Source of the DNA: Takakia lepidozioides
Taxonomy: Eukaryota > Plantae > Bryophyta
Reading direction: 5' to 3'
Assembly (NCBI GenBank): GCA_030704615.1
Contig: CM060731.1
Location: 5,518,001-5,582,000, forward strand
Length of the DNA stretch: 64,000 nucleotides
Below the pieces are notes generated by a model. It saw only the letters and a list, made by a program, of their open reading frames with translations, was not told the origin of the DNA and did no database searches. The translations under genes and the position numbers were made by a program. Shown in pieces: positions 8,271 through 60,400 of the stretch. How positions within the stretch are numbered: position 1 is the stretch's first letter; every line of letters starts with the position of its first letter.

Positions 8271-8297
8271 CACCTACTTCTAAAAAATGGTCTCTAT

Positions 8298-11400: not shown

Positions 11401-13090
11401 CAACATCAGGCTCCCAATTGTCCTCCGTGACTGCAACCTTGAGTCCAGCAGGCTTAGAGGTAGAAGACGCGTCCCGTGGTTGCTATGCTGCAACCTCTTG
11501 AGCAGTGACCACTGCCTCCTCTGTCAGTGACAATGTCTCATCCTGCCCCATCATCCCATCCTTGAGGATCTCCTCAATCCGAGAAAAATCCCCAACCTGA
11601 TCCATCACTGCCGCCTTGGCTGCCAACTCCTTCTAAATCTCGAGCACCTCCCACGTGTGCCATGGATGCGGCCTGCACCTCGTGGTCCTCACCTACTCGC
11701 CCCCACTTGCTGCCTGTACCGTCTCGGTAGGCAGGGAGACCATGAAGGGAAGTGTACTCCGTACTCTGCGCTACTCAGCCATAGCCAAGCTGATAATCCA
11801 GGTCAAGCAATTGAGATCCATTGCTTGCCCCAACACCTGACGACGTGATGCCTCAGAAAGAGATGGCACCGCCGTGGTACCTGTGGTAAAACCCATCGCC
11901 CCGCTCGCGCTCGTCAGCATTGGGCTCCACTAATGCTGCTCGTGGTTGACCCACCCTGTTGACCACTGCCAAAGGCAAACGGTCATCGTGTCTCACACGT
12001 TGAGACTGCCTCCCTGTGTCCAAAATGCTATCCACTGTGAGGTGTGCTGGCCGCTGCACCCCATCAAATGCACGCTTGAGCAGTGCGGGTGGCATCAAGT
12101 TAGTCCACCATAGTTGTGGACGATGAGCCCATGACCCCACTGCAGCTGCATCCAGCAACACTGCTGACCCAAGCCATGACCGGACTTGATGCACACTGGC
12201 CATCACCCTGGCCCAAGAATCACCCATTAGTGGCACATTCTCCAAGATGTATGCTGGAGATACAGCTTGATGAAGTTGCAAGTGGCGCAAAATCCGCACC
12301 ATCTCCCAAAACAGACCCGTCCTCGAGTCTCGCAATCCATTGCTATGCCCGGCTGATGAATGCCCTTTGCAGGGCCAACCTGCCACTACCAGATCAATGG
12401 AGCCAACCTGCTCCAAATCCTGCGCCCCCAGCAACGAAATGTCTGCTGGCAAGGCTTGTTGGTATCCACGAACTGCAGACACTAGCAACAAATCAGGGTA
12501 CTGCTGTACCAACTGAGCAACATGGCGCAGTGAGACGCGTCGTGCAGTCTCATCCCTCTCCACATACAGGTAACGTCGAACTCGTACACCTGCCTGCAGT
12601 ACTGCAGCCAATCCAGTGCTGATCCCGCCAAACAAGTCCAGAAGGCATATGCCTTCATCCGGGCACTGCCACACAAGAGGTGTGGTGTCCAATGGCAACA
12701 ACTGAGGTGGTCCTGGTGCAATCACCGCACTCTCCTCTTCTCCTGACGGTACGAAGGCCTCTACCCAGGCTTGTTGTACCCGTCCATCAGCAGCCTGCTG
12801 CAAATCCTTGCTCGTACCCCATAATGGAGTGTGAGCAACCATGGCACATCCTCTGCATGGGCATTGCCTTCCAGCAACTCTCCAGGCCAACTAACTGTAG
12901 CTGTAAAGGCGGCTAGTGTTGGTATCTTGCCCCGCTGGGCAGCCGCAATACCCCCAATGAATGTCACAGGGAGCTGTGCACGACGACCATCCCCTGACTG
13001 CCATCCAGGCCTATAGGATGCTGACTCCTCCCAAAAGTCCAGGGTGAAGCCCATGGGATATAACACTGCCCCACCAACAATGATATCGTA
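8447..13090 (-). mobile_element. Ty3/gypsy-DNMT element copy A (end of protease region, DNMT, RT, RNase H, integrase, half PHD); degenerate, cut by the gap
   Basis: ORFs 11853-12890 (DNMT), 10970-11356 (RT), 9043-10539 (RNase H and integrase), 8417-9076 (integrase C-terminus). Confidence 0.95.
11795..12650 (-). pseudogene. C5 DNA methyltransferase domain, copy A (28-aa internal deletion relative to B/C)
   Basis: LDLFGGIST (motif I), GWPCKG (IV), ILENV (VI), HRPQLWWTNL (VIII). Confidence 0.9.
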
Positions 13091-15555: not shown

Positions 15556-18500
15556 TTGGCTCTGGCTGAGCAACGCAGAGTGCGGAGTACACTTCCCTCG
15601 ATGGTCTCTTTGCCTACCGAGACGGTACAGGCAGTGAGTGGGGGCGAGCATGTAAGGACCACGGGGTGCATGCATCCATGGCACACGTGGGAGGTGCTCG
15701 AGGTTAGATGGAGTTGGCAGCCAAGGCGGCTGTGATGGATGAGGTTGGGGATTCTTCCCGGGTTGAGGAGGTCCTCAAGGATGAGATGCTGGGGCAGGAT
15801 GAGGCCTTGTCATTGACTGAGCAAGCAGGGAGTACTGCTCAAGAGGTTGCAACATAGCAACCACTGGACGCGTCCTCCACCTCTAAGCCCACTGGACTTA
15901 AGGTTGCAATTACGGAGGACAATTAGGAGCCTGACATTGGACCCATTGTCACCGGAGGAGAGAGACGACATATACGGCGGTTCCTGAGGGCTTACAGGAA
16001 TTGCTTTGTCTTCAGTTTGAAGGACTTGGGAGCACTGAAGGGTCAAGAGATCCGTATTGAGTTGGCCACTGACACGCCAATCTTTTGGAGACCCTATAGA
16101 TACAGTGACATGAAGAGGTCTTTGATTCAGATGAGGACTCAAGATCTCTGGGAGGCAGGTTTGGTGGAGCTCTCTGGTGGAGAGTATGCTTCAGCCACAG
16201 TGATGTCAGCCAAGAAGGATGTCTATGGCAATTGGACGGAGAGACGTATGTGCGGTGATTACCGGCCTGTAAATCGTCAGACCAAGTCCGATAGGTATGC
16301 CATGCCGACACCAGAGGAGATCTTTGATGCCATCGGGCATGCTAAGGCCTTTAGCACTTTGGATTTATGATCCGGATATCACCAGTTGCCAATCAAGGAG
16401 GCGGACAAGCAGAAGACGGTATTCTGGGGGATCAATGTGCACGGCAAGGATGGCCTATATCAGTGGCGGTTCTTATCATTTGGGCTTAAGAATGCTCCTG
16501 CAGAGTTTCAGAGAGTCATGGATAGGATTCTAGCAGGGGTGGACTTTGCTCGGTGCTACATAGATAACATCATCATCTTTAGTGTTACGATGGAAGAGCA
16601 TGAGAGACACCTTCAGGTGGTATTGGAGCGCTTGAGAGCGCACGGATTGAAGTTGCATCCGGGGAAGTGCAAGTTTTTCCACAACCAGATTGAGTATCTG
16701 GATCACATGATATATCCTGGAGGATTGGGGGTACAGCAGACTAAGGTAGAGGCCATTGCACAAATTCCACGCCCCACGGATGTGAGCCGAGTTCGAGCTT
16801 TCATGGGGTTGGCAAACTATTATAGACGGTTTGTCAAGGGATTTAGTACCATTGCAAAGGCTCTAACCAAGCTGACCAAGGTGGACCATGAGTGGCAGTG
16901 GGAAGATGAGCAGGAACGAGCTTTTCAAGAGCTCAAGGTGAGGTTGACTTCGGCGCCTATCCTGAGACGACCTATCAGGGGGCGTCCCTTTCAGCTGCAT
17001 ACGAATTGGAGCATGCTGGGGCTTGGAGCGGTGCTCACACAGGTGGATGATTAGGGAAGAGAGTTCATAGTGGCTTATCCTAGCTGCTCGAACAACGTTG
17101 CAGAGGCTAAGTACAGCTCATATGAGGGAGAGTGCTTAGCTGCAGTGTGGGCCGTGGCACACTTCAGGTGTTATCTATACGGTAATCTTTTCACCCTTGT
17201 CACGGATCACCAACCACTCAAGTGGTTGATGGAGTCAGACAAGCTTACGGGGAAGCTTGCACGGTGGGCACTCATACTCCAGGAGTATGACTTTCAGGTT
17301 GTGCATCGACCGGGTTTGGTCAATCGGGATGCGGATGGATTGAGTCGCAATCCATGCACGAGCCAACAGGATGACACTGGAGCTCGGTGGCATGGTGAGA
17401 CGGACGAGGAGATGGTGCCGGGATGGCACGCATCTGCATTTTTGTGTATCTTGGCATGGGGAGGTCAGGTTGGACCTACAACAGGGATGACTGTAGATGG
17501 AGTGTCTGAGGACCCTGAGGCTAGTGATGAGCCAGGTGGTGCCAGAGATATACATGAGGATTCGGCTGTGTTGGACTACCTCCGCACGGGAGACACGGCA
17601 GCCACTGTGACTGCCAGGGAGAGAGATCGGATCCTGCAACGAGCCAAGAGGTTCAAATGGGAGGGGACACACCTACTTTGAGTGTGGGAGGATGGTCAGG
17701 TGAGGATTGTGCCTCACCCCACACAGCGTGCACGGTTAGTGCGGCATGCCCATGAGGAGTCGGGGCATTTTGGAGTGCGACGCACTCACAGTTTACTGCA
17801 GGGGCAGTATTGGTGGCGTGGTATGCATACAGAGGTGCAACAGTTCGTGGCTAGGTGCATGGTGTGTGACAGGGTGCGTGCTTCATTCAACGCCCCTACA
17901 CCACAGTTGCATCATTTACCAATCATGGGATTGGGCTACAGGTGGAGTCTTGACTTCGCAGGACCGTTGCCACTTACTATGCGCCACCACAGATATGTGT
18001 TGGTGATGGTGGAGCACTTCTCCAAGTGGATTGAGTTGGTTCTATTGCCTGACAAGGCTAGTGAGGGGGCTGCGTATGCATTCTTGGATCGTGTGCTTAG
18101 CCGATTTGGTGCTCCAGCTGAGGTACTCACGGATCAAGGGAGAGAGTTCTTGGGGGAGTTTCAGGCTTTGTGTGATAAAGCCTTGATAGACCACCGCACC
18201 ACTTCTCGGGATCATCCTGAGGCCGATGGCTTGGCATAGAGAGTTGTTCAGACGGTGAAGAGGGGTTTGCGCAAGTATGGCTTGCAGAAGGGACACCTAG
18301 GAGATTGAGATCTTCAGGTTCCTTGGTTAGCCATGGGCTACAGGTTCAGCAAACAAGCATCACTTGCCTCTTTCTCACCATATTTCCTTCTCTTTGGCCG
18401 AGAGCCGGATTCGCCTGCAACCATTCGTAGGGACACTGCTCAAGTCGTTAACCTTGACGATCCGGACGTGTGGGTACGTGCATGTGATCAGCGTGCAGAG

Positions 18501-18846
18501 TTGTTCAAGAAAGTCATGCCCATGGCTTTTGAGAACCTTGCCATTGCACAACACCGTGATACGTTGAGGTATGCCACTATGTGGTGGAGGATATCGTCCT
18601 GGGGTTCGGAGGTTTAGCCCTGGTGACTATGTTTATTTGCAGCAGACTGCTCCTACGACTCTAGCTGTTACTACAGGGCGTGTTATTCTGAGGGTTCGAG
18701 AGGTGTTGCCCTCAGGGGTCCTGATCTTGGAGGGTCGGGATGGCATGACTTGGAAGGACCATGTGCGTAATTGTGCGCCATGTCACATTCCCAATGTCGA
18801 TGGCAGAGTTGACCCAAACTTGGTAGTGGTACCTGCAGGTTTGAGG

Positions 18847-18990
18847 TGCATGCTCTGTGGGTCTGCCAAAGGGGCAGCCACTATGCTGGTGTGTGATCAA
18901 TGCTGAAGGGGTTGGCATATGGGATGCTTGACACCACCTCTTGAGAAGGTTCCTGACGGAGATTGGTTGTGTCCACACTGCTTGGGATAG
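18847..18990 (+). pseudogene. PHD finger at the integrase C-terminus, copy B (internal TGA)
   Basis: CMLC...MLVCDQC*RGWHMGCLTPPLEKVPDGDWLCPHC, a C4-H-C3 pattern. Confidence 0.9.
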
Positions 18991-19094
18991 TGGCAGTGGA
19001 CATGACTGGAGGCAGCTAACAAGACATGGGAGGCCAATCTCATAGGAGTCAATACATGAGATCCCAAGCTCAAGTTCACAGGTTTCAAGACGGC

Positions 19095-19446
19095 TGTCAA
19101 GTTAAATAAGCACAGTGTGAAACTAGCTAGAATAAAGCTAGTTATTTGTATTTAACACTTGGATTTAGGTCAAGTGTTAAATCAGGTGTCAAGTTTAGTT
19201 TGACACCTGACCCGTCTTATCTTCACGAGAGCGGCAGTCGCGCAGCTCATCTCTCTCGAGTTGAGCCTGCGCGACCGAGCTCCTGCATGCGTTTAGATCT
19301 GAGTGTACTCATGATGGGAGTGTAGGTTGTTGTGGGGTGGAGTCCCCATAGCTTGGGGTGCCCCTGGCTCGACTACTATTTCAAAGAGTGATGGTTTTGG
19401 TTTTCATGTTTTGTGTCAACAGTGTGTTCTTAGCTTTGTTCTATCA
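19095..19446 (+). repeat. LTR-like segment (3' LTR of B, possibly shared as the 5' LTR of C)
   Basis: Nearly identical to 30667-31020. Follows pol in both copies and ends CTATCA. Confidence 0.75.
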
Positions 19447-21639: not shown

Positions 21640-22476
21640 GTGAGTGTGCCACGAAAGATCCACAATCCTGTTTCTAGAACTTGTGTTTGTCTATATGAGA
21701 GACAAATCTGTGGATGTACTCCTTGTATGGCTGGGGGAAATGAGGACGTAATTGAAGGGCATGTCTCTTCTCTTAGCCTGTGCGCACAAGGGGACAGGAT
21801 TTATGTTTCCCAAGGAACTCAGACTGATTTGAGTGGAGAACAGTTGGACGAGTTGATTGCATACTGGGAGTCAGGCATTAGCAGTAGACAACAGACTGCT
21901 GTAGTTGGCATTGAGGGCCTCAATATCGCCTTGGACAGTCAGAACTCTGTTGGAGCCAGCAGTTCTGCAGCTGTAGGTGAAATACCAAAGTGGGTGAAAG
22001 CTAGGCTTGGAACACAGCCAAAGACAGCCCTGGGGACCAAGGTGTTCAGCCACAAGGCCGTGGTGTACTGGAGCAGAGGAGCAGGAGCTACACAAGTTTG
22101 TGCAATCAGACATGGTTGCAGCCGGATACGCTCTGCACAGGGCAACCGCGAGCGGGGGTTCATCAGCAATGACATGTTTGTTGTGCGTGAAGGAGATGCA
22201 GTCATTCGCAATGAGGACACCCGCAACCGTCTCAAAGCTTTCGAGTTGAGAGACTATCATACCCTACCTTTGTTTTCTTTAGTATTCAGTGAGCGGGAGA
22301 TAGGGGAGTATTGCTTTGTCTCTACCTGGCAGAAAGAGGAGGAGGGTTGGTTAGAGCGAGCTACTGTAGCTTGGGACAAGGTTAGTGGCAGGTTTTTGGA
22401 CATAGATATACCTCCTACACCTTACCATCATGCAGAGCGAGGCACTTTGAGAGAAGTCTGGCAGTTGATAGCATAG
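21640..22476 (+). CDS. Unknown 278-aa ORF upstream of gag in copy C
   Basis: Uninterrupted, protein-like composition, same strand as gag. No family recognised. Confidence 0.4.
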   Translation: MSVPRKIHNPVSRTCVCLYERQICGCTPCMAGGNEDVIEGHVSSLSLCAQGDRIYVSQGTQTDLSGEQLDELIAYWESGISSRQQTAVVGIEGLNIALDSQNSVGASSSAAVGEIPKWVKARLGTQPKTALGTKVFSHKAVVYWSRGAGATQVCAIRHGCSRIRSAQGNRERGFISNDMFVVREGDAVIRNEDTRNRLKAFELRDYHTLPLFSLVFSEREIGEYCFVSTWQKEEEGWLERATVAWDKVSGRFLDIDIPPTPYHHAERGTLREVWQLIA

Positions 22477-23176: not shown

Positions 23177-26100
23177 GTGCACTTTCATTCGCCATTGTTG
23201 TGGGACGACATGGAGGAGATGTATGGAGCTACCAAGGGGCCTCGTAGGTACTCTGGAGCTGTGGGCACAATCGAGTTGGATGACTTTATCCAGGAGTTCG
23301 ACAGCTGGTATGATTTGCAGCAGATGCGCAATCCACAGCTATTCACCCCATTCATGGCGTGGAAGGGACTGTTCCAGCATTTGGAAGGCCCGCCTATGGA
23401 CGATTACCACGAGTTCAGGCGAGGACATGAAGCAGAGATTGAGGAGTGGAGGATGTATTGGTCACCTGACTACGTCTCCATTACTCGAGGCACGACGCGA
23501 CCAGTAGCTGCATCAATACCAATAGCTCCCACTGCCAGCACTAGTAGTGGAGCAAGTAGTGCTGGTACTTCTGCAGGTGGTACCAGTTCAAAAGGTGCTA
23601 CTACTCCTCCTGCCACGACTACAACACATGTGCCTAGATTCAACCCGGTGGTGGAGTTCTTCCAGGAGTTGCGGAGGAACTACCAAGGTGTACGGACAGA
23701 GAAGCTGCGAAGTTTGCAAGACTTCCAGCGCAAACCCAGTGAGAGCCTGCGAGAGGCATACACTCGTATGAGGCGCTTGATAAGTGTGACCCAAGGGGTT
23801 ACTAAAGCTCAGACAATCCAGTTTTGGTATGGAATTCTGGACAAGGAGCTCAAGAGAAGGGTGCGAGATGCAACCTTGTTACAAGCAGCCCAACCCACAT
23901 TAGCAGATGTGTTTCTGCTGGCTGAGCGGATTGAGCTCAACATGGTGGAGGAGCGAGTTGTCACCATTGGATTTGGCAAGGACATGCCTGCACAAGGCGC
24001 AGCTGCCAATCCACAGGCACAAGGTACTGCCCAGCAGCGTGGTCAGGGGGACAAGGTTTCCCAACCCAAGTTCCATGGAGCTTACAGGGGACCTCAGGTG
24101 CAGAGGCCCGTGGCGTCTTTTGCAGGCCAACAACAACCAGGGGTGATATGTTGGACATGTGGAGGACCCCATGTCAAGAGAGATTTCCCAGAGAATGGCA
24201 AAAGGCCGGCACAAGCACAGCTTGCACAGTTGCAGTGTGGGCATTGTGGCAAGTATGGGCATGGAGATGCCCAGTGTTATGACTTGCATCCTGAGTTGCG
24301 CCTAGGCCAGTTCCAAGGGAACAATGGTGGCCGGGGGCGAGGTGGACCAGCCCAGAGAGGACGAGGTGGTCGGGCACGAGGTGCAGGCCAAGAGCAAGCT
24401 CAACATGGCCAAGGGCGCGGAGGTCAGGGTGTTGATCAAGGCATGGCCAACCGGCTTCAGCAGCTAGAGCAGAGGCTCGCTGCCATGGCTATAGCTCAGG
24501 CGGTACCGGCTCCCAGGCGGGATGGTCCACCTCCTGTTCCTGAGGGAGGAGATATGGGAGGCATGGGATTCATGTGCGGAGCAGCACTACCACTAGAGCA
24601 GGTGGAGTCTGCTGCAGCCGTGACTCGAGGAGCAGCACGAGTTCCTGAGCCACGAGGTGCAGAGGTGGAGTTGGATCCACAACGTGGGGAGGCAAGCCGT
24701 CAGGCGAGGCTGCCTCAGTCATTCACCTTGGCGGAGACAGTGTTAACGCCATCCATGGCACCTAGTTCTCGCCCGACTGTTATTGAGGCGGAGGTTTCTA
24801 TGTCATTGGGGAGAGCTACACGTGCAGCACTGACACATGCTACCAAGGCTAGTGCAGCCGGTGTGTTATTGGGGGCAGCCACCTCTGTGTGTCAAGCCCC
24901 ACTGTTCTCGGCAACCATGATTGCGACGCCGGGGGTAAGACCAGCTGCAGTGTTCAGACTAGCAGCAACACTCTGTGAGAGTGGGGAGGTCACTTCATCT
25001 TCTGCGGAGTTAGTGGAAGGTGTAGTGGCAGAGGGATCCTCGGATTTGAGGGTCAAGACTGCCACGGCTGCGCCCTGGCAAGCTGCAGCTGCCAGGTTGA
25101 CGGAGCTGCCAGCTAGGCCAGCCTTTGAGCGCGCCATGGTGACACCTGGAGTTCTCTTGTTAGACAACCAGGATGGCATTTTCTCTTTGAGTGGACCGGC
25201 AGGCAAGAAGTACCGACCACTGCGGGTCTTGTTGGACTCGGGAGCTCAGCCACTGATGTTGGGCAGAGCTGCTATTGCAGGTTTGGGCCTCATGGAGGCG
25301 GATATGGAGCCTTGTCCTTTCCAGATACAGACATCTCTGGGAGGATCAGAGCAGGCTCGGGGCATGACACGGCATCAGTTGGCCATTAGACTGCAGCCGG
25401 ATCATCCTATTGATGGCTCAGTGAATGCGAGCCAAGGCCATTGTGACAGACGCGGTCTCTTACGATGTCCTCGTTGGTGGGGCAGTGTTATACCCCATGG
25501 GCTACATCCTGGACTTTTGGGAGGAGTCAACATTCTACAGGCCTGGATGGCAGTCAGGGGATGGTCGTCATGCACAGCTCCCTGTGACATTCATTGGGGG
25601 TATTGCGGCTGCCCAACGGGGCAAGATGCCAACACTAGCCGCCTTTACAGCTGCAGTTAGTTGGCCTGGAGAGTTGCTGGAAGGCAATGCCCATGCAGAG
25701 GATGTGCCACCTCCAGCAGAGCAGGATGACATGCATGGTATGGCGGAGTTGCCTGCCATGGTTGCTCACACTCCATTGTGGGGTACGAGCAAGGATTTGC
25801 AGCAGGTTGCTGATCGACGGGTGCAACAAGCCTGGGTAAAGGCTTTTGTACCGTCAGGAGAGGAGGAGGGTGCAGGTATTACACCAGGACCACCTTAGTT
25901 GTCACCATTGGATACCACACCTATTGTGTGGCAGTATTCGGATGAAGGCATTTGCCTTCTGCACTTGTTTGGCAGGATCAGCACCGGATTGGCTGCCGTG
26001 CTACAGGCAGGTGTGCGGGTAAGGCGTTACCTGTATGTGGAGAGGGATGAGACTACACGACACGTCTCACTGCGCCATGTTGCTCAGTTGGTACAGCAGT

Positions 26101-27195
26101 ACCCTGCTTTGTTGCCAGTGTCTGCAGTTTGTGGATACCAACAAGCCTTGCCAGCAGACATTTCGTTACTGGGGGCGCCGGATTTGGAGCAGGTTGGCTC
26201 CATTGATCTGGTAGTGGCAGGTTGGCCCTGCCAAGGGCATTCATCAGCCGGGCATGGCAATGGATTGCGAGACTCGAGGACGGGTCTGTTTTGGGAGATG
26301 GTGCGGATTTTGCGCCACTTGCAACTTCATCAAGCTGTATCGCCAGCATACATCTTGGAGAATGTGCCACTGATGGGCGATTCTCGGGCCAGGGTGATGG
26401 CTAGTGTGCATCAAGTCTGGTCGTGGCTTGGGTCAGCAGTGCTGCTGGATGCAGCTGCAGTGGGATCACGGGCTCATCGTCCACGGCTATGGTGGACTAA
26501 CTTGATGCCACCCGCACTGCTCAAGCGTGCATTTGATGGGGTGCAGCGGCCAACACACCTCATAGTGGACAACATTTTGGACACAGGGAGGCAGTCTCAA
26601 CGTGTGAGACACGATGACCGTTTGCCTTTGGCAGTGGTCAATAGGGTGGGTCAACCACGAGCAGCATTACCAACACTGCTCAGCTTCCCAGGATCCCATG
26701 CTTTTCGGGATGGTGGACCTGGCCTCTTGTGGGATGCTCAGTTGCAACAGTTAGTGGAGCCTAATGCCGACGAGCGAGAGCGGGCTATGGGTTTTCACTG
26801 GGACCACGGCGGTGCCTTCTCTTTCTGAGGCATCACGTCGTCAGGTGTTGGGGCAAGCAATGGATCTCAATTGCTTGACCTGGATTATCAGCTTGGCTAT
26901 GGCTGAGCAACGTAGAGTGCGGAGTGCACTTCCCTTGACAGTCTCTCTGCCTACCGAGACGGTACAGGCAGCGAGTGGGGGCGAGCCGGTGAGGACCACG
27001 GGGTGTAGACATCCATGGCACACGTGGGAGGTGCTCGAGGTTCAGAGGGAGTTGGCAGCTAAGGCGGCTGTGATGGATGAGGTTGGGGATTCTTCCCGGG
27101 TTGAGGAGGTCCTCAAGGATGAGATGATGGGGCAGGATGAGGCCTTGTCATTGACTGAGCAAGCAGGGAGTACTGCTCAAGAGGTTGCAGCATAG
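23177..27195 (+). pseudogene. gag: Gag-protease-DNMT polyprotein ORF of copy C (frameshifts near 25423 and 26795, stop at 25896)
   Basis: Retrotransposon Gag motif FQRKPSESLREAYTRMRRL; zinc knuckles CWTCGGPHVKRD(F/C) and CGHCGKYGHGDAQC; RGG-rich tract; LLDSGA protease; DNMT 25950-26892; ends at TAG 27193-27195. Confidence 0.9.
25950..26892 (+). pseudogene. DNMT3-like methyltransferase domain, copy C (motif I altered to LHLFGRIST)
   Basis: GWPCQG, ILENV, HRPRLWWTNL, ERAMGF and RRQVLGQAM are retained. Confidence 0.9.
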
Positions 27196-30100
27196 CAACC
27201 ACGGGACGCGTCCTCTACCTCTAAGCCCACTGGACTTAAGGTTGCAGTTACGGAGGACAATTGGGAGCCTGACATTGGACCCATTGTCACCGGAGGAGAG
27301 AGACGACGTATACGGCGGTTCCTGAGGGCTTACAGGAATTGCTTTGCCTTCAGTTTGAAGGACTTGGGAGCACTGAAGGGTCAAGAGATCCGTATTGAGT
27401 TGGCCACTGACACGCCAATCTTTCGGAGACCCTATAGATACAGTGACATGGAGAGGTCTTTGATTCAGATGAGGACTCAAGATCTCTGGGAGGCAGGTTT
27501 GGTGGAGCTCTCTGGTGGAGAGTATGCTTCAGCCACAGTGATGCCAGCCAAGAAGGATGTCTATGGCAATTGGACGGAGAGACGTATGTGCGGTGATTAC
27601 CGGCCTGTAAATCGTCAGACCAAGTCCGATAGGTATGCCATGCCGACACCAGAGGAGATCTTTGATGCCATTGGGCATTCCAAGGTCTTTAGCACGTTGG
27701 ATTTACGATCCGGATATCACCAGTTGCGATCAAGGAGGCGGATAAGCAAAAGACGGCATTCTGGGGGATCAATGAGCACGGGAAGGATTGCCTATACCAG
27801 TGGCGGTTCTTACCATTTGGGCTTAAAAACGCTCCCGCTGAGTTTCAAAGAGTCATGGACAGGATTCTAGCAGGGGTGGAGTTTGCTCGGTGCTACATAG
27901 ATGACATCATCATCTTTAGTGCTACGGTGGAGGAGCATGAGAGACACCTTCAGGGGGTATTTGAGCGCTTGAGGACGCACGGATTGAAGTTACATCCGGG
28001 CAAGTGCAAGTTTTTCCACAACCAGATTGAGTATCTGGGTCACATGATATATCCTGGAGGATTGGGGGTACAGCAGACTAAGGTAGAGTCCATTGCACAG
28101 GTTCCACGCCCCACGGATGTGAGCCGAGTTCGAGCTTTCATGGGGTTAGCAAACTATTACAGACGGTTTGTTAAGGGATTTAGTGCCATTGCAAAGGCTC
28201 TAACCAAGCTGACCAAGGTGGACCAGGAGTGGCAGTGGGAAGATGAGCAAGAACAAGCTTTTCAAGAGCTCAAGGCGAGGTTGACCTCGGCGCCCATCTT
28301 GAGACGACCTATCAGGGGGCGTCCTTTTCAGCTGCATACAGATTGGAGCATGCTGGGGCTTGGAGCGGTGCTCACACAGGTGGATGATGAGGGAAGAAGT
28401 TCGTAGTGGCTTATGCTAGCCGCTCGAACAATGCTGCAGAGTCTAAGTATAGCTCATATGAGGGAGAATGCTTAGCTGCAGTGTGGGCCGTGGCACACTT
28501 CAGGTGCTATCTATACGACAATCTCTTCACCCTTGTCACGGATCACCAACCACTCAAGTGGTTGATGGAGTCAGACAAGCTTACGGGGAAGCTTGCACGG
28601 TGGGCACTCATCCTTCAAGAGTATGACTTTCAGGTGGTGCATCGACCGGGTTTGGTCAATCGCAATGCAGATGGGTTGAGTCGCAATCCATGCACGAGCC
28701 AGCAGGATGACACTGGAGCTCGGTGGCATGGTGAGACGGACGAGGAGATGGTGCCCGGATGGCATGCATCTGCATTTCTGTGTATCTTGGCAGCGGAAGG
28801 CCAGGTTGGACCTGCAACAGGGATGACTGTAGATCAAGTGTCTGAGGACCCTGAGGCCAGCAATGAGCAAAGTGGCGCCAAAGATATACATGAGGATTCA
28901 GTTGTGTTGGACTACCTCCGCACTGGAGACACTGCAGCCACTGTGACTGCCAAGGAGAGGGATCGGATCCTACAACGAGCCAAGAGGTTCAAGTGGGAGG
29001 GGACACACCTGCTCCGAGTGTGGGAGGATGGTCGAGTGAGGATTGTGCCTCACCCAACACAGTGGGCACGGTTAGTGCGGCATGCCCACGAGGAGTTGGG
29101 GCATTTTGGGGTACGCACCCATAGCCTACTGCAGGGGCAGTATTGGTGGCGTGGTATGCACACAGAGGTGCAACAATTTGTGGCTAGGTGCATGGTGCAG
29201 GGTGCGTGCTTCATTCAACGCCCCTACTCCACAATTGCACCCTCTTCCGATCATGGGATTGGGCTACAGGTGGAGTCTTGACTTCGCAGGGCCGTTGCCA
29301 CTGACCATGCGTCACAACTAGTACGTGTTGGTGATGGTGGAGCACTTCTCCAAATGGATTGAGTTGGTTCCATTGCCTGATAAGGCTAGTGAGGGAGCTG
29401 CGTATGCATTCTTGGATTGTGTGCTTAGCCGATTCGGTGCTCCAGCTGAGGTACTCACGGACCAAGGGAGAGAGTTCTTGGGGGAGTTTCAGGCTTTGTG
29501 TGACAAGGCCTTGATAGACCACCGCACCACTTCTCGGGATCATCCTGAGGCCGATGGCTTGGCAGAGAGAGTTGTTCAGACAGTAAAGAGGGGTTTGCGC
29601 AAGTATGGCTTGCAGAAGGGACACCTAGGAGATTGGGACCTTCAGTTACCCTGGTTAGCCATGGGCTATAGGTTCAGCAATCAAACATCACTTGCCTCTT
29701 TCTCACCATACTTTCTTCTCTTTGGCCGAGAGCCGGATTTGCCTACATCCATTCGCAGAGAAGCTGCTACAGTTCTTAATCTTGACGATCCGGACGTGTG
29801 GGCACGTGCATGTGAGCAGCGTGCAGAGTTGTTCAAGAAAGTCATGCCCATGGCTTTCGAGAACCTTGTCATTGCACAACACCGTGATACGTTGAGGTAT
29901 GCTACCATACGTGGTGGGGGCTATCGTCCTGGGGTTCGGAGATTCAACCCTGGTGACTATGTCTATCTGCAGCAGACTGCTCCTACGACCCTGGATGTGA
30001 CTGCAGGACGTGTTATTTTGAGGGTTCGAGAGGTCTTGCCCTCAGGCGTCTTGGTCTTGGAAGGTCGGGATGGCATAACTTGGAAGGACATGTGCGTAAT

Positions 30101-30319: not shown

Positions 30320-30579
30320 TGGGAGTGGATACAACCATGGAAGGCTAACAAGAAACGCAAGGCCCAGCTACTAGGAGACCTTGAACACACGAGGTCCTGA
30401 CTCAAGTTCACAGATTGCAAGACGGCGACTAACGATGGGGCTACTCTTGTACCCGGCCTCTTGGTCTATAGAGTTTGAGTGCAATATGGACAGTGATAGA
30501 GGACTTAATACGGCTGTGGCTATTACATCTTGTAGCTATCTGGAGTTAGAGGGACCTATCCACCAGCTAGGGGGGCAAT

Positions 30580-31020
30580 TGTGGCAGACTACTTTATTGT
30601 GCATGTATGTGTGGTGTGGTTTGGACAGCGATGTAGTTGTGTAGCGATACGTATGCGCACGACGGCTGTCAAGTTAAATAAACACAGTGTGAAACTAGCT
30701 AGAATAAAGCTAGTTATTTGTATTTAACACTTGGATTTAGGTCTAGTGTTAAATCAGGTGTCAAGTTTAGTTTGACACTTGACCCGTCTTATCTTCACGA
30801 GAGCGGCAGTCGCGCAGCTCATCTCTCTCGAGTTGAGCCTGCGCGACCGAGCTCCTGCATGCGTTTAGATCTGAGTGTACTCATGATGGAAGTGTAGGTT
30901 GTTGTGGGGTGGAGTCCCCATAGCTTGGGGTGCCCCTGGCTCGACTACTATTTTCAAAGAGTGATGGTTTTGGTTTTCATGTTTTGTGTCAACAGTGTGT
31001 TCTTAGCCTTGTTCTATCCA
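30580..31020 (+). repeat. 3' LTR of copy C
   Basis: Starts TG after the purine tract and ends CTATCCA. The segment 30667-31020 matches 19095-19446. Confidence 0.7.
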
Positions 31021-31021
31021 T

Positions 31022-31465
31022 TGTGGCAGACTACTTTATTGTGCATGTATGTGTGGTGTGGTTTGGACAGCGATGTAGTTGTGTAGCAATATGTATGCGC
31101 ACGACACGGCGACTAACGATGGGGAAACTCTTGCACCCGGCCTCTTGATCTATCGAGTTTGAGTGTAGTAGGGATAGTGGTGGAGGACTTAGTGAGACTA
31201 TGGTCACTATCACATCTTGTGGCTACCTGGACTTAGAGGGACCTAAGCACCAGCTAGGGGGGCGATTGTGTGGACTAGTGACTGACATAGTGGGCAGCAT
31301 AGTGGCAGCATAGTGGCAGCCTAGTGACTGACTAGTTGTAGCCTAGTGGTTGGACTAGTGGCTGGACTAGTGGTGGACTAGTGGTATACTAGTGTGTGGT
31401 GTGCACATGTGTTGTGTGGTTTTGGACAGCGATGTAGTTGTGTAGCGATATGTATGCGCATGACA
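31022..31465 (+). repeat. Rearranged tandem duplicate of LTR start, 3' UTR and PPT, with a CTAGTG-based microsatellite-like expansion
   Basis: 31022-31106 repeats 30580-30663; 31107-31266 repeats 30423-30579; 31267-31465 is a variant LTR start. Confidence 0.75.
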
Positions 31466-33927: not shown

Positions 33928-36552
33928 TCACCCACAAGAACAGACCCCATCTTCAAAGTGGTGAAAGCGGTGGGCATCCCGTACAACTATTGCTCGCCCA
34001 ACAATTTTTGAGATGAACTTGGTGGCATTGTGGCAGTCACCACACACCCTAAGGTTTTTAATGATGCGGATAGGCGATCCAGAGGGTGTGCTGATGAGCC
34101 CAAAAGCAATGGCCAGCCTCTCACTGTGGTGGCAAAGGGAAAATTCCTTTTGTTCCTCCTCCAAGTCCTCCAATGCAAAGCGCATGTCAGGCACATACCC
34201 AGCGTCCTTCATCAGCACAGACAATCTCGTCAGCTCAGCATGGATTCCCTCAATTTGTGGATGTGACTTGTCCTCTACAACAAATGCATGCATTTGGCTG
34301 TTGACCGCAATATAGCTGCACCCTGGCTTCTTTCTGACACCTCTGTCCTCCATTAACCTTCTCACCTTGGCTTTATCATCCCACCTGCCAGCTGCAGCAT
34401 AGATGTTTGATAGTAGCACATAAGCTGCAGCATCCTGTGGGTCCCACTTGAGAACATATTTTGCAGCACGTTCTGCTACCTCCACATCTCTATGAATTCT
34501 ACAGGCACCAAGCAAAGCCCCCCACACTGCACCATGTGGTTCAATTGGCATTTTCTTGATGAAGTCCTCTGCCTCATCCAATCGCCCCGCACGACCAAGA
34601 AGGTCCACCATGCAGCCAAAATGCTCTACTGTAGGCGTGAGGCCATGATCTTGACTCATGGAATCGAAGTACTCACGTCCTTCATTCACTAGGCCTACAT
34701 GGCTGCATGCAGAGATAAGCGAAATGAAGGTGATATCATCTGGCCTCAAGCCTTCCTGATGCATTTGTCCAAATAGTTGAAGGGCCTCCCTACCACACCC
34801 ATGCTGAGAATATCCTGCTATCATTGCGTTCCATGTGACCACATCTCTTCTGGGCATTTTGTCAAACACTTCATGCGCATCCTTTAGGCTCCCGCATTTT
34901 GCATACATGTCGACAAGGCTATTCTCTAGATTGATATGTGTCCCAAATCCAATTTTAATAATGTCAGCATGAGCCTGCTTGCCCTTTTCCAGGGCTCCTA
35001 TTCTGGCACAGGCATTGAGGATGCCAATGAACGTAACTCTGTTGGGTGTCACCCTTTCCCGTTGCATTTGCTCGTAGAGCTCAAGAGCCTTTTCACCATG
35101 CTGATGCTGAGCATATCCTGCAATCATTGCATTCCATGAGACCACATCTCGTTGAGCCATTTTGTCAAACACTTGACGTGCATCTCCAATGCTTCTGCAC
35201 TTGGCATACATGTCAAGAAGGGTCGTCTCCAAATTAATAGATGATGAAATTCCAGCTTTGATGATGTCAGCGTGGACCTGATTGCCTTTCTCCAGGGATC
35301 CAAGGCTGGCACATGCATTTAAAATGCAAATGAATGTGACCTTGTCAGGGGTCACCCTTTCTCTTAGCATTTGCTCATACATTTTGAAAGCCTCCTCACC
35401 ATGCCCATTCTGAGCATATCCTGCCATTATTGCACTCCATGAGACCACATCTCGTTTAGCCATTTTGTCGAACACCTGGCGTGCATCCTTTAGGCTCCCA
35501 CATTTTGCATACATGTCAACAAGGGTATTCTCCAGTTGAATGTTCAATGGAATTCCACCTTTAATAATGTCAGCATGGACTCTCTTGCCATTGTCCAGGG
35601 CTCCTACGCTGGCACATGCATTGAGAACGCAAATGAATGTGACACGGTCAGGCGTCACCCTTTCTTGTTGCATTTTCTCATAGATTAGTAGAGCCTCTTC
35701 ACCATCTCCATGCTGAGCATATCCAGCAATTATTGCATTCCATGAGACAACATCTCGGTTAGGCATGTTGTTGAACACTTGACGTGCATTTTGAATGCTC
35801 CCACATTTGGCATACATGTCCATGAGGGTATTCTCTAAATTAATATATGGTGCAATTCCAGCTTTGATGATGTCAGCATGAACCCGCTGGCCCTTTTGCA
35901 GGTCTCCTAAACTGGCACATGCATTGAGAATGCAAATAAATGTGACCCTATCAGGCATCACCCCTTCCTTTTGCATTTGCTCATAGATTTTATGAGATTC
36001 TTCCGCATGCCCATGCTTGGCATATCCAGCCATCATCGTTGTCCATGTGAATATATCTCGCTGAGACATTTCCTCAAACACATGTTGTGCATCCACCATG
36101 CTTCCACATTTGGCATACATGTTGAGAAGGTTGTTGACTACAAAGATGGTTGGCTTGAATCCAGTTTGCAGAATGTGGGCATGAACCTGCTTTCCCTCTC
36201 CCAGGGCTTTCATGTTGATGCACCCCTGCAAGAGCCAGACATACATATCAGAGTCCGCCTGAATGCCTCCTTGGTCCAAAGAATGCAGCGCCTCCTTCAG
36301 TCTTCCCTTTTCAAAAAGTGACCTCACAGTCCCAGGAGGGCTGGACATAACTTTAATTACTTCCTCTCTTGGCCCTCGTTTCAAGTTGATTGCAATAGTA
36401 GAGGTGCTAATCCAGCGGCCAGTCTGATGTCCAACAAACGTGTGTCCCTGATGCAACCCTGCCATCCTGAATAACTCTGAATTGCAAGAGACAATTTTGG
36501 GTTCAGAACATCTCAAAAGCTTGAATATCACCTCAAAGCAAGACCTCTTCAT
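33928..36552 (-). CDS. PLS-class PPR protein with E1-E2-DYW domain (organellar C-to-U editing factor) lacking the last three residues; alternative start 36465
   Basis: Intronless 883-aa frame; five MYAKC-containing PLS units; PG box KKPGCSYI; HSERLA and CGDCH deaminase motifs; ends [11 protein letters not shown]-stop. Confidence 0.95.
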
Positions 36553-37727
36553 GATGACCAGGTTGTAGTGCAGTTGCAACTGATTTCATTTCTTCTCTTG
36601 GAGCTCCATGCAGCATATCAAACTTAGGACCATCACCAGATTGTGCCAACCTTCAGTCGTAGTGACAGGCTCTGCTTTCACACAATGCGGGTTTGATCAA
36701 CTCTCCAGCCACAGAGCCTCCTTTCTACACTTATGTTGGAAGCCCGGATATATTGAGGTCTTCTGTGAAAACCACAGATGCAGCTGAGCAGCTAAAGGTT
36801 AAACCACAGCCTCGTACACATGAGGCTACAAGCACAAAAGCGCCAAAAAAGCTGTGAATGCATTATTTGAGCATGCAATTTCAACTTGGATGCAAGTGTT
36901 GATGATCATGGTGATCCAAGATAAGGAACACTACAGTAGGATTATTGCCAAAGATCATCATTGACACTATTCTAAGCAACTAAGATCACAGTTTAATCTC
37001 CGAGAAGACACCATGCTAGATTGAGTCAGAGAAACCTGAATGTCCTTTCCATCCTCTAGACCTGAAAAATAATAGGATGTAACGCAGTCAGCCTCACCTC
37101 GAACCAATTGGACCAATGTGAAGGATTTGACAGGAATTCCTCATAAAGCCGTTCTATATTCATCGCTTGGCCTGCATGCAGGTACCTCTTGAACATAAGA
37201 TGCACCATAACCAGAGCTTTATTGAGGAAGCCTTCTGCCACATTCAAGCAGAGAAAAGATGAAGGCGAGGTAATGGTAACAGTTGGCTCAAATGGACGAG
37301 ACAAGGTCATCGACGTCTTCAAGTTTGTTGAGTCTGTCCCTTGGAAGAACAGCGGACCTGTCAAACAGCCCCGGCCTTGGACGGATGAATTCATTACAGG
37401 TAGAAGTCCTCCAGAATTCAGATCATGAGATGGCAGCCAAGATTGATAGGACATGCAGAAAATGTGGCTCGAAGTCTGCACAAATCCACGCTGAGATTGT
37501 TCAGAATCTTTACTATATATAAGGGCCACCTCGTCAGGAGAAGACTGATGTCACAACTCAGTAGGCTGCCCACCTCTGTACACTGAGCTACTCCAGCTGA
37601 GGAGAGGGCGTGATGAGAATAATTTCTCATAATTCACCGTCCTTAGCTCCCACGCAGGACGCAGATGGTCAGATCACCCTCGCTAGAGTTTTCTTCCTCC
37701 ATGTCAATCTTTGGGTGACGAAGACGC

Positions 37728-37742: not shown

Positions 37743-39795
37743 ACTGCCAGACGAATAGTCTTGTCAGCGTACGGTCGAACGCTCAAATCCACATGTGCAA
37801 ATTGTCATCAATCCAAGCATACTCGGATCAGAAACAATCTCCTGCTGAATTGGCTCACACTGACGGTTTCAAGTGCAGAGGAAGTCTTGTCAGAACTCTA
37901 GGCTCTCTTTGGGTAGGACACAGGGGCTGGAATATGTATACGGAGAGAGAGATAAGTAGAGTAAGAGTTGAACGATGGAAGTGTGTGTAGCATATCTGCG
38001 CTAATTGGGTAGCCCACGTTGTTGAGAGATGAGGTTCAAATCGAGAGCAAGTTTTGTGCGGTTTTTTACTTCAAATCGGGAGAAAGCGTTCTCAGACTTT
38101 TCGGTCCAAGTTGAGAAGCTGTTACAGACTTTTGGGCTTGATTTTGGGAACTGCCTCGTAAGATTTTTGGGTTAAAGTAGAGGGTGTGTCTCTGTGAATT
38201 TTCGTCCCTTGCAAGGACACTGGCATTGGTAAGACCACTATATTTGTAAAAGGACATTTGACCATATGACGTGAACAGGGTATAAGAGTCGGTAGGAGCT
38301 GGAGGCTATGATATGCAAGGTGCATAATCTCGCTCGTCTCATGTCACTCGTGCTACCAGTCTGCCAGTATGTAAATCGTTAAGTTTCTTTGTGCTGTTTC
38401 TTTTAAATTGGAAATCTGTTCGGATTCCTTGCATTGCCCACACTTTGTAGCTGAGCTGCACTATAGTATCCCTGGTATCTTGTATTTTTATTGCGTTGAT
38501 CCAGATTAAGACCAAGGGCAAAGGAGGATGTTATGTACTGAGGTCTTGGGACCTGGGCAAAGGCACAGAAGAAAGGATACTCAAAGTATGTAGAGAGGTG
38601 CAGGTGTTCCCAGCTGTAAGGGAGGGCACGAGACTAAGACACTTGAGAACATTTTGTAGAGCATTTTCAAGTGCCTGGACAACGACCCTTGGTACTCATC
38701 CTTTGTTTCTATTTTCCTTCCTCCCCCACCCTGGACTTCTTTCTTTCATTGACGTCACAAAATTCTTTCTTCGTTCTCTCTGTTGCTCTACTTACAGACA
38801 CATCTGCAGTAAGTGACATGTCCAAGCAATGGGCATGATGGTGTTGTGGTCCTTCTGGAGCAGTGGCACTGCAATCCAACTCGCAGTCACACTGGTGGAT
38901 TGAAAATGGCTAACAGACAAAGAAAGGAGGAAAGTTTTGTAGTCTCCAGAGAGAGAGGTTAAATTGGGCAAAACTACAGTAGCACTCCTCAATAAAATTT
39001 GGGCAGAAAATTGAATTGTGGCCATACATCATCCTCATTGAATTGCCAGCTATGGGAAACAAATGCGGCGCCTTGAGCATCCATTGATCACTTGGAAAAG
39101 ACTTTTCAATCATTACAATGGAGTAGAGTGACACTTATTGGGAAAGTACATTCACATGTCGAAACCATAATTCATGGAAGAAATATGGCTTGAAGTTATT
39201 TGCAAACTAGTTAAAGGTCTTACTTTTAATGTTGTACTTGCATGCAGTCAAAGCATTAAGAATAGAATGCGTTTGGCAAGAGTTCATTTCAGATCAGTGG
39301 TGGGCCAACAGTTTTAACCAGGTATAACTATCCTAAATGCTGCTATTTCGTAAATTGAATCATGATTTCAGTTGGGTAGATGTACTGGTGAAACTGGTTG
39401 TTCAATGTTGTGTGCCCGGTGTTTTGGAAGACACTTGGTAGGCTTTGGTGTCGTAACCTGGTCTGTCTGTGATGATCATTGTAGTAGAGTTCCTTGAATG
39501 GCTACGTTTGTTGTGTTCTCACAGAAGGAGACAAAATTCCCAAGCTTCAAACATAAGCGTATGAAAAAGGCATGGCAGTCAAATCCACTTTTGGTGAAGT
39601 CAGAGGTGCCCTCTATGACACAAGGTCGAGCACAATATGGCGATGATCAGATCTGGACGTGCAGCACGGACATCCAGGCAAAGAATCCAATCCACAGGTA
39701 TTGTGTTGTGGATAATGATTCAAAATTTAAATTGCTAAAGTCTTCAAAGTAGATGGCTGCAGATTCTTTTGCGACTCAGTGGAAAGTCCGTCCCC

Positions 39796-54261: not shown

Positions 54262-54409
54262 CACTACAGGAAAGGGGGGCCTTTGCGACGCCCGCGCCAC
54301 GCCGCAGCGTCGGGAAAACGCCCTTTTCGGGCACGTGGGAGCCGTAGAATTTGCGACGCCCGGCCGTCGCCAAAATTACGTCACAAAAATGCGACGTATG
54401 GGGGTCGCG
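54262..54409 (+). mobile_element. Duplicate CACTA terminus
   Basis: Same as 8298-8446. Confidence 0.7.
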
Positions 54410-57400: not shown

Positions 57401-60400
57401 TGAGTCCAGCAGGCTTAGAGGTAGAAGACGCGTCCCGTGGTTGCTATGCTGCAACCTCTTGAGCAGTGACCACTGCCTCCTCTGTCAGTGACAATGTCTC
57501 ATCCTGCCCCATCATCCCATCCTTGAGGATCTCCTCAATCCGAGAAAAATCCCCAACCTGATCCATCACCTGCCGCCTTGGCTGCCAACTCCTTCTAAAT
57601 CTCGAGCACCTCCCACGTGTGCCATGGATGCGGCCTGCACCTCGTGGTCCTCACCTACTCGCCCCCACTTGCTGCCTGTACCGTCTCGGTAGGCAGGGAG
57701 ACCATGAAGGGAAGTGTACTCCGTACTCTGCGCTACTCAGCCATAGCCAAGCTGATAATCCAGGTCAAGCAATTGAGATCCATTGCTTGCCCCAACACCT
57801 GACGACGTGATGCCTCAGAAAGAGATGGCACCGCCGTGGTACCTGTGGTAAAACCCATCGCCCGCTCGCGCTCGTCAGCATTGGGCTCCACTAATGCTGC
57901 TCGTGGTTGACCCACCCTGTTGACCACTGCCAAAGGCAAACGGTCATCGTGTCTCACACGTTGAGACTGCCTCCCTGTGTCCAAAATGCTATCCACTGTG
58001 AGGTGTGCTGGCCGCTGCACCCCATCAAATGCACGCTTGAGCAGTGCGGGTGGCATCAAGTTAGTCCACCATAGTTGTGGACGATGAGCCCATGACCCCA
58101 CTGCAGCTGCATCCAGCAACACTGCTGACCCAAGCCATGACCGGACTTGATGCACACTGGCCATCACCCTGGCCCAAGAATCACCCATTAGTGGCACATT
58201 CTCCAAGATGTATGCTGGAGATACAGCTTGATGAAGTTGCAAGTGGCGCAAAATCCGCACCATCTCCCAAAACAGACCCGTCCTCGAGTCTCGCAATCCA
58301 TTGCTATGCCCGGCTGATGAATGCCCTTTGCAGGGCCAACCTGCCACTACCAGATCAATGGAGCCAACCTGCTCCAAATCCTGCGCCCCCAGCAACGAAA
58401 TGTCTGCTGGCAAGGCTTGTTGGTATCCACGAACTGCAGACACTAGCAACAAATCAGGGTACTGCTGTACCAACTGAGCAACATGGCGCAGTGAGACGCG
58501 TCGTGCAGTCTCATCCCTCTCCACATACAGGTAACGTCGAACTCGTACACCTGCCTGCAGTACTGCAGCCAATCCAGTGCTGATCCCGCCAAACAAGTCC
58601 AGAAGGCATATGCCTTCATCCGGGCACTGCCACACAAGAGGTGTGGTGTCCAATGGCAACAACTGAGGTGGTCCTGGTGCAATCACCGCACTCTCCTCTT
58701 CTCCTGACGGTACGAAGGCCTCTACCCAGGCTTGTTGTACCCGTCCATCAGCAGCCTGCTGCAAATCCTTGCTCGTACCCCATAATGGAGTGTGAGCAAC
58801 CATGGCACATCCTCTGCATGGGCATTGCCTTCCAGCAACTCTCCAGGCCAACTAACTGTAGCTGTAAAGGCGGCTAGTGTTGGTATCTTGCCCCGCTGGG
58901 CAGCCGCAATACCCCCAATGAATGTCACAGGGAGCTGTGCACGACGACCATCCCCTGACTGCCATCCAGGCCTATAGGATGCTGACTCCTCCCAAAAGTC
59001 CAGGGTGAAGCCCATGGGATATAACACTGCCCCACCAACAATGATATCGTAAGAGACTGCGTCTGTCACAATGGCCTTGGCTCGCATCACTGAGCCATCT
59101 ACAGGATGATCTGGTTGTAGTCCAATGGCCAACTCACGCCGTGTCATGCCCCGAGCCTTGCTTTGATCCTCCCAGAGATGTCTGTATTTGGAAAGGACAA
59201 GGCTCCATATCCGCCTCCATGAGGCCCAAACCTGCAATAGCAGCTCTGCCCAACATCAGTGGCTGAGCTCCTGAGTCCAACAAGACCCGCAGTGGCCGGT
59301 ACTTCTTGCCTGCCGGTCCACTCAAAGTGAAAATGCCTCCCTGGTTGTCTAACAAGACAACTCCAGGTGTCACCATGGCGCGCTCAAAGGCTGGCCTAGC
59401 TGGCAGCTCCGTCAACCTGGCAGCTGCAGCTTGCCATGGCGCAGCCGTGGCAGTCTTGACCCTCAAATCCGAGGATCCCTCTGCCACTACACCTTCTAGT
59501 AACTCCGTAGAAGATGAAGTGACCTCCCCACTCTCGCAGAGTGTTGCTGCTAGTCTGAACACTGCAGCTGGTCTTACCCCTCATGGTTGCCGAGAATAAT
59601 GGGGCTTGACACACAGAGGTGGCTGCCCCAATAACACACCGGCTGCACTAGCCTTGGTAGCAGATGTCAGTGCTGCACGTGTAGCTCTCCCTAATGGCAT
59701 AGTAACCTCCGCCTCGGTAACAGTCGGGCGAGAACTAGGTGCCATGGATGGCGTCGACACTGTCTCCGCCAATGTGAATGACTGAGGAAGCCTTGCCTGA
59801 CGGCTTGCCTCCCCACGCTGTGGATCCAATTCCACCTCTGCACCTCGTGGCTCAGGAACTCGTGCTGCTCCTCGAGTCACGGCTGCAACAGACTCCACCT
59901 GCACTAGTGGTAGTGCCGCTCCGCACATGAATCCCATGCCTCCGATATCTCCTCCCTCAGGAGCAGGAGGTGGACCATCCCGCCCGGGAGCCGGTACCAC
60001 CTGAGCTGTAGCCATGGCAGCGAGCCTCTGCTCTAGCTGCTGAAGCCGGTTGGCCATGTCTTGGTCAATACCCTGACCTCCGCGTCCTTGGCCATGTTGA
60101 GCTTGCCCTTGGCCTGCATCTCGTGCCCGACCACCTCGTCCTATCTGGGCTGGTCCACCTTACTCCCGGCCACCATTGTTCCCTTGGAACTGGCCTGGGC
60201 GCAACTCAGGGTGCAAGTCATAACACTGGGCATCTCCATGCCCATACTTGCCACAATGCCCACACTGCAACTGTGCAGGCTGTGCTTGTGCCGGCCTTCT
60301 GCCACTCTCTGGGCAATCTCTCTTGACATGGGGTCCTCCACATGTCCAACATATCACCCCTGGTTGCTGTTGGCCTGCAAAAGATGCCACGGGCCTCTGC

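Follow-up and report, generated by a model that had tools for sequence, protein, structure and literature searches.

Does a stop codon standing in frame in the middle of a retrotransposon polyprotein act as a leaky terminator, or is it a lesion that dead copies have inherited from one another? The question arose from a 64,000-nucleotide (nt) stretch of the Takakia lepidozioides genome (GenBank assembly GCA_030704615.1, contig CM060731.1, positions 5,518,001 to 5,582,000 of the forward strand; the whole stretch is called the window below), in which four remnants, copies A to D, of a bryophyte family of Ty3/gypsy elements are interrupted in this way. Elements of the family encode Gag (with a CCHC motif), protease (PR) and a DNMT3-like methyltransferase (DNMT) upstream of the stop, and reverse transcriptase (RT), RNaseH (RH), integrase (INT) and a PHD finger downstream of it. 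On comparative sequence evidence, we consider it likely that the conserved in-frame stop serves programmed readthrough of the kind used by tobacco mosaic virus (TMV), which would yield abundant Gag-PR-DNMT and rare full polyprotein.

Pfam and motif searches confirmed the domain order Gag CCHC, PR, DNMT, stop, RT, RNaseH, INT and PHD, and the Ty3/gypsy order (PR-RT-RH-INT, with Gag upstream) was evident from Pfam matches on the window pieces and on intact relatives. The methyltransferase matched PF00145 in window pieces and relatives alike, had DNMT3A and DNMT3B as its closest solved relatives, and in the window copies retained motifs I, IV (PC) and VI (ENV). Protein relatives at about 45–52% identity were present in Marchantia polymorpha, Sphagnum fallax and Calypogeia fissa. 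The window features on which the argument depends are listed here, each open reading frame (ORF) being named by its position before (ORF1) or after (ORF2) the stop.

23207..27192, plus strand: copy C, ORF1 remnant (Gag, protease, DNMT3-like methyltransferase), with frame changes near 25420-25434 and 26776-26795
about 24236, about 25235 and 25899-26825, plus strand: copy C, ORF1 motifs, respectively CCHC, LLDSGAQ (the DSG of PR) and DNMT
27193..27195, plus strand: copy C, in-frame TAG separating the DNMT and RT sides; intact relatives have the homologous stop
27196..27201, plus strand: copy C, CAACCA hexamer (CAR-YYA, type I leaky-stop context; consensus per PMC3542737)
27196..30316, plus strand: copy C, ORF2 remnant (linker, RT, RNaseH, integrase with H2C2 and rve, PHD finger), with four frame changes
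15855..15863, plus strand: copy B, junction; remnant about 13591-19445, 5'-truncated
11477..11485, minus strand: copy A, junction; remnant about 8447-13090, 5'-truncated
57438..57446, minus strand: copy D, junction; remnant about 54410-61932, a 99.9% duplicate of A

The initial annotation had reported TAGCAACCA in every copy, and the string was indeed exact at all four positions (27193 and 15855 on the plus strand, 11485-11477 and 57446-57438 on the minus strand), with four matches in the window against 0.72 expected from shuffles. Self-comparison of the window, however, showed that 1-13090 and 45966-59051 form a 13-kb duplication at 99.9% identity; copies A and D are thus a single insertion, and the independent copies number three, not four. 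These three are 91–95% identical to one another, copies B and C being direct neighbours about 11.3 kb apart, and in a 310-nt alignment of the junction mean column identity was 94% and about 87% of columns were invariant. With copies this similar, an invariant 9-mer is expected from shared descent and carries no weight, and the window copies by themselves prove nothing about a signal.

It had also been claimed that the Gag-PR-DNMT frame ends at the TAG in every copy. This holds conceptually, but alignment to an intact Marchantia relative, by which the frame changes were mapped, showed all four window copies to be frameshifted pseudogenes: copy C has two frame changes in ORF1 and four in ORF2, copies A and B are both 5'-truncated, with a frameshift in B between DNMT and TAG, and copy D has a 1-nt indel about 120 nt 5' of the TAG. 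Around the TAG of copy C a single frame is open for 146 codons before (26755-27192) and 224 codons after (27196-27867). As proposed, the RT side of this copy continues in the same frame with no ATG before RT-like sequence begins; the frame reads QPRDASS...FLRAYRNCFAFSL, and its first Met, at ...YSDMERS, already lies in RT-like sequence. The four copies are dead relics of a retrotransposon family, and the feature is real at the level of that family. As to their arrangement, the A/D duplication is direct with its halves 46 kb apart, either a recent segmental duplication or an assembly duplicate, and copies A (minus) and B (plus) meet head to head at about 13090-13591, each cut short in its 5' half, and the arrangement suggests that the region was rearranged or that the junction is nested or palindromic.

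Taken alone, these copies fit an explanation in which the TAG is a functionless nonsense mutation, inherited from a crippled master copy or spread by segmental duplication: they are all pseudogenes, A and D are duplicates, B and C stand in tandem, and at 91–95% identity shared descent alone accounts for the identical 9-mer. What separates this explanation from a maintained signal is the state of the homologous codon in elements elsewhere, of which the following could be read.

L001, Marchantia AP019869.1: TAG CAACAA; ORF1 5749-9834 and ORF2 9838-12972 both open
L002, L004 and L007, Marchantia: TAG CAACCA; not fully intact
L005, Sphagnum fallax: TAA CAACCC; both sides in the same frame
L006, Calypogeia fissa: TAG CAATCA; a further premature stop upstream
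L008, ENA contig: TAG CAATCA; intact
L009, JGI contig: TAG CAATCC; ORF2 runs off the contig
L010, ENA contig: TAG CAATCA; ORF2 runs off the contig
L011, ENA contig: TAG CAGTTA; intact
L012, NCBI GCA_017884025.1: TAG CAACCA; intact
L013, JGI contig: TAG CAATCA; ORF2 runs off the contig
L040, metagenome locus: TAG CAGTTA; intact, with 1369 open codons upstream and 1047 downstream

Several Marchantia ORF1 proteins finish at the same residue. A scan of JGI metagenomes with a profile of the DNMT C-terminus added 47 loci, mostly of Sphagnum-type DNA, and the junction could be located in 28 of them (19 TAG, 6 TAA and 3 sense codons). Counting all loci outside the window, a stop stood at the homologous codon in 37 of 40 (30 TAG, 7 TAA). 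The same stop is thus found in elements only about 45–75% identical in protein (Marchantia, Sphagnum, Calypogeia and metagenome lineages), and five of these (L001, L008, L011, L012 and L040) are fully intact, with Gag-PR-DNMT3, a single TAG and RT-RNaseH-INT-PHD in the same frame, both ORFs being fully open. Intact copies with a sense codon at this site had been named in advance as evidence that would count against a signal; none occurred among the five intact elements, and the three copies that do have one (TAC in L025 and L046, GAG in L052) are decayed, with other stops within 50–165 codons in all three. The TAC (Tyr) and GAG (Glu) codons of these Sphagnum-type copies are each one base from TAG; plant tRNA-Tyr inserts Tyr at leaky UAG.

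The context of the stop is conserved as well. The next codon was CAA or CAG in all 40 outside loci, and the second was CCA, TCA or TTA in most lineages, the hexamer in most of the deep lineages being CAACCA, CAATCA or CAGTTA. The amino acid at the second codon therefore varies (Pro, Ser or Leu) while YYA is mostly kept, that is, the bases are conserved and the amino acid is not. In Marchantia 86% of Gln codons are CAG, yet CAA follows the stop in all Marchantia copies. The surrounding linker, in contrast, is hypervariable across lineages (AQEVAA-stop-QPRDASS, PPLEQVS-stop-QQVTVSP and GNGISSSN-stop-QSKVVPT are examples), its flanking positions being conserved in only 3–6 of 8 deep lineages against 7–8 of 8 for the stop and CAA. 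The stop alternates between TAG and TAA from locus to locus and remains a stop, and ORF2 keeps frame 0 in all lineages even though 26, 28, 32, 33 or 34 codons separate the stop from the TG(G/A)E motif. A stop and CAR codon kept within a hypervariable linker, the interchange of TAG and TAA, and a frame held at 0 while the linker changes length together argue that the stop and its context are held by selection and not by mere descent. The earlier proposal of a conserved readthrough-type signal is supported on this wider sample, and a nonsense mutation without function is extremely unlikely to be the explanation.

The context is that of a known leaky stop. The initial annotation equated UAG-CARYYA with the TMV context, and this is borne out by PMC3542737, where CARYYA constitutes the type I leaky context of TMV and acts after UAA and UGA too; in TMV the hexamer alone suffices, and it is portable between hosts (PMC3542737; PMC2194720). 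The type I arrangement, a single in-frame stop between same-frame ORFs followed by a CAR-YYA hexamer, was present in the bryophyte elements, the hexamer being partial in some lineages. As in the TMV replicase gene, there is an in-frame UAG followed by CAA or CAG and then YYA, a polymerase ORF lies downstream in the same frame, the host is a plant, and the tolerance of the motif for UAA (PMC3542737) matches the TAA of Sphagnum-type copies. Unlike in TMV, the signal would here act in the mRNA of a long terminal repeat (LTR) retrotransposon and not in a viral RNA genome, the hexamer departs from the consensus at position 5 or 6 in several lineages, and the elements have a candidate long stem-loop 3' of the stop, whereas TMV needs none.

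Under programmed readthrough, one genomic mRNA would be translated in functional members of the family. For most ribosomes translation would end at the stop, a UAG or, in some Sphagnum-type copies, a UAA, with release of Gag-PR-DNMT, and in a small fraction a near-cognate tRNA would decode the stop, translation continuing in the same frame to give Gag-PR-DNMT-RT-RH-INT-PHD. The stimulator would be the 3' hexamer CAR-YYA, as at the TMV replicase stop, possibly reinforced by a long stem-loop whose 5' arm starts about 11–16 nt past the stop and whose 3' arm covers the T-G-(G/A)-E-(R/A)-R codons. We infer readthrough as the route past the stop, and its efficiency, from the arrangement described above, and protease and methyltransferase would be made at Gag level with RT and INT scarce. 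The methyltransferase might then be plentiful in the particle, as the initial annotation proposed.

Two other routes to the downstream domains have to be weighed. The stop could be spliced out with a short intron between GAG-PROT-DNMT and RT-RH-INT, so that some of the transcripts would code for the complete polyprotein; the plant Ty3/gypsy Ogre elements provide a precedent (PMC6317226). Public gene models of Marchantia and Sphagnum do place an intron over the stop. Those models (proteins P0003, P0018 and P0004, at L004, L005 and the P0004 locus) join DNMT to RT by three different introns; as each cuts out a different segment, they resemble work-arounds of a gene predictor and are probably annotation artefacts. 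An intron would impose neither a single stop nor frame 0, and both are found in every lineage despite linker indels, the chance of such frame keeping over about eight deep lineages being roughly (1/3)^7. The pattern that is conserved is stop-CAR-YYA and not splice sites (these were not formally scored, and short GT/AG matches are uninformative). Ogre elements remove a spacer of about 270 bp (274 bp on average) with several stops (PMC6317226), whereas the junction here has one stop in a leaky-type context, with ORF2 in frame 0, and shows no spacer of a few hundred base pairs with several stops. Splicing is, on this evidence, quite unlikely to account for the junction.

Alternatively, the stop could be a true terminator and ORF2 be translated separately, by internal initiation, by reinitiation or from a subgenomic transcript of an internal promoter. 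A promoter at the junction confounded reporter work on Tca2, and Marchantia and Sphagnum copies have an in-frame ATG 3–13 codons past the stop. The start codon is not conserved, however: the window copies lack a Met for about 85 codons, by which point the sequence is RT-like, and elements of clade 2 (the window copies belong to clade 1) lack a start codon in the first 20–30 codons. Separate translation also leaves the invariant CAR-YYA directly after the stop unexplained. Fusion to Gag is the usual way of RT and INT into retroelement particles, and RT and INT made without it would, we infer, miss that route. We regard independent expression of ORF2 as very unlikely.

The RNA 3' of the stop also yielded a candidate structure, one that the initial annotation does not mention. 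A segment from +14 to +30 relative to the stop was found to pair, as a candidate stem, with a segment 60–100 nt downstream that lies over the T-G-(G/A)-E-(R/A)-R codons. In copy C the arms are as follows.

27206..27222, plus strand: candidate 5' arm, pyrimidine-rich, Ser/Thr codons
27292..27309, plus strand: candidate 3' arm, coinciding with conserved codons (T-G-G-E-R-R) in the N-terminal region of RT

In clade 1, the window included, the arms are of UCCUCU type against GGAGGAGAGAG type, and in clade 2 they are GUGCCGGCAC against GGUGCCGAGGCAC; the arm pairs differ between the clades and yet pair within each, so that both arms have changed together. Duplex energies of cognate arms ranged from -15 to -32 kcal/mol, and mean arm-pair energy was -20 to -21.5 kcal/mol within clades against -11.5 to -13.6 kcal/mol across them. 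All 15 representatives were more stable than shuffles of the 5' arm (z -1.6 to -4.5) and also than resamples in which synonymous codons were exchanged in both arms (z -1.1 to -4.0, mean -2.2), while the fold of the whole segment had z < -2.4 in five of ten elements and the 120-nt fold of copy C a z of -2.56. Within clade 1, 86.5% of cells pair, compared with 49–66% in slid registers, and two pairs show compensatory changes; clade 2 has too little variation for covariation, and an offset of about 4 nt between the pairing registers of the two clades precluded a column-wise analysis across both. Rfam gave no match around the junction, and no counterpart emerged of the conserved pseudoknot that murine leukaemia virus (MLV) has some 8 nt beyond its stop, the candidate being an extended hairpin instead.

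Several observations weigh against readthrough in this family or against a structural contribution to it. The window copies are pseudogenes, so nothing functions at these coordinates today, and Sphagnum-type copies are mostly decayed, a fully intact one not having been recovered among them. Not all loci have the full CAR-YYA, the hexamer being CAACCC in Sphagnum-type copies (CAACCT in one), CAACAA in L001 and CAATCC in L009. In one divergent relative (L038, about 1789-1794) TAG TAG is followed by CCAAGG with no CAA, and this locus is either a decayed copy or a different arrangement. Tca2 serves as a warning that reporter readthrough does not always follow where an in-frame stop is accompanied by a predicted structure (PMC2194720). 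As for the stem-loop, its support comes from about two or three independent clades, which do not share one pairing register; many registers are available to the clade 1 arms, low-complexity tracts of pyrimidines on one side and purines on the other, and each clade 2 arm is a near-palindrome that could instead form a local fold of its own. With a plain MAFFT alignment of the 120 nt past the stop, RNAalifold gave no consensus structure, a null result that is misleading because the variable loop was misaligned; when the arms were anchored separately, their complementarity appeared. Taking both sides together, the predicted stem-loop is a possible rather than an established structure of the family junction.

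The history of the stop was approached through relatives in which it is absent. A protein search that admitted lengths up to 2508 amino acids, with identity measured to P0193, recovered 15 clusters at 48% identity or more; all were ORF1-only (1228–1451 amino acids), and no fused protein was found among them. Fused CCHC-PR-DNMT-RT-RH-INT proteins of 2188–2374 amino acids occurred only at 47% identity or less, and the Closterium relatives are one continuous, fused ORF. A midpoint-rooted RT tree places the stop-bearing elements in a group separate from the fused ones, with the window copy beside the Calypogeia copy, its nearest element (66% identity in the RT N-terminus). Since the fused outgroups already carry the DNMT, the stop probably arose after DNMT capture, from a single-ORF ancestor, the root of the tree being a midpoint only. 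Over the RT N-terminal protein region the Marchantia element L001 and the Sphagnum elements L005 and L014-L058 are 82–83% identical, which is high for hosts so long diverged and may reflect horizontal transfer or strong constraint. Many metagenome polyproteins (P0196, P0206, P0233, P0116, P0069 and others) have the DNMT after RT, again with INT and PHD present, and constitute a second architecture of DNMT-carrying gypsy elements.

A fuller account, which we put forward tentatively and judge to have a little less than an even chance of being right, is that an old, bryophyte-wide Gypsy-DNMT3 lineage evolved from its single-ORF ancestor a two-part signal, UAG-CARYYA with an extended 3' stem-loop, placed after protease and methyltransferase, such that the DNMT3-type enzyme would be made in Gag-like amounts and RT and integrase in traces. 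If so, the family would provide the first documented case of a TMV-type leaky stop within the polyprotein of an LTR retrotransposon, and the methyltransferase would be needed stoichiometrically, for example in particles or on new cDNA, and not catalytically.

Readthrough of an in-frame stop is rare among LTR retrotransposons, and most plant elements are a single ORF. In the gag-UAG-pol of MLV, as is proposed here, one in-frame UAG sets the ratio of structural to enzymatic products and RNA structure lies downstream, but the MLV stop comes directly after Gag with PR downstream, and its signal is a purine-rich spacer and pseudoknot, whereas the stop of the bryophyte elements follows PR and DNMT in a CARYYA context. 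SIRE1, a Ty1/copia element of soybean, is likewise a plant LTR retrotransposon in which a single in-frame stop is suppressed to express the region downstream; it belongs to a different superfamily, and its stop lies between pol and an env-like ORF and not inside a Gag-Pol polyprotein. The initial statement that recoding normally sits at the gag/pol border overstates the case: in some described plant LTR groups a GAG-PROT ORF precedes one for RT-RH-INT (PMC6317226), and the Ogre elements among the plant precedents share with the present family a boundary between abundant and rare products that follows protease and not Gag (PMC6317226). A boundary after the protease therefore has plant precedent in itself; what would be new is a methyltransferase on its abundant side.

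A report on Klebsormidium nitens has described gypsy elements with DNMT3 there and mentions no internal stop in them (de Mendoza et al. 2018, PMC5890265). The resemblance of KnitGypsy-Dnmt3 to the present family, drawn from features and not from sequence, includes the Ty3/gypsy type and a DNMT3-type C5-methyltransferase in the polyprotein with its catalytic motifs kept. The DIRS-like A-coding-B-A-B repeats of the K. nitens element (PMC5890265) were seen also in Marchantia L001, where 2826-3122 matches 13248-13545 and 13134-13246 matches 13545-13657; in copy C only short permuted repeats were present past the PHD finger (30422-30663 against 31020-31270), and an upstream partner was not found. 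The elements described here differ in being bryophyte and in having a C-terminal PHD finger. In the limited collection of literature searched, we found no account of this stop, nor of bryophyte gypsy elements that carry a DNMT.

From where the stop lies, the transposon DNMT3 is predicted to be made far in excess of RT, which would constrain models that explain the presence of methyltransferases in retrotransposons. The proposed signal is short and portable, and the stop-less relatives (Closterium and metagenome lineages) offer a natural comparison with a clade that has kept the stop across mosses and liverworts.

The remainder of the window contains two intronless PPR-DYW genes in inverted orientation, at 33931-36579 (minus strand) and 39769-42111 (plus strand), which are about 77–79% identical and encode PPR repeats, an E motif and a DYW deaminase, their 303-nt periodic repeats corresponding to PLS triplets. 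PPR editing factors of the PLS/DYW class mark a land plant with organellar RNA editing; to our knowledge, marchantiid liverworts have neither RNA editing nor DYW genes, which speaks against Marchantia as the source of the window. An origin in Klebsormidium, considered at first, was rejected because the protein matches are to bryophytes (about 50% identity) and the PPR-DYW genes are present as well. The 8.4 kb at 1-8447 (the same as 45966-54410) lie beside the 3' end of copies A and D and have a strongly negative GC skew (down to -0.35); this segment has no long minus-strand ORFs, and its plus-strand ORFs are without a Pfam match. The ORFs of the window for which Pfam gave nothing include 1836-2939, 5248-6009, 21640-22473 and 43395-44279. 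Lastly, a 92-nt tandem repeat of 3.4 copies with 93% matches occupies 62350-62656.

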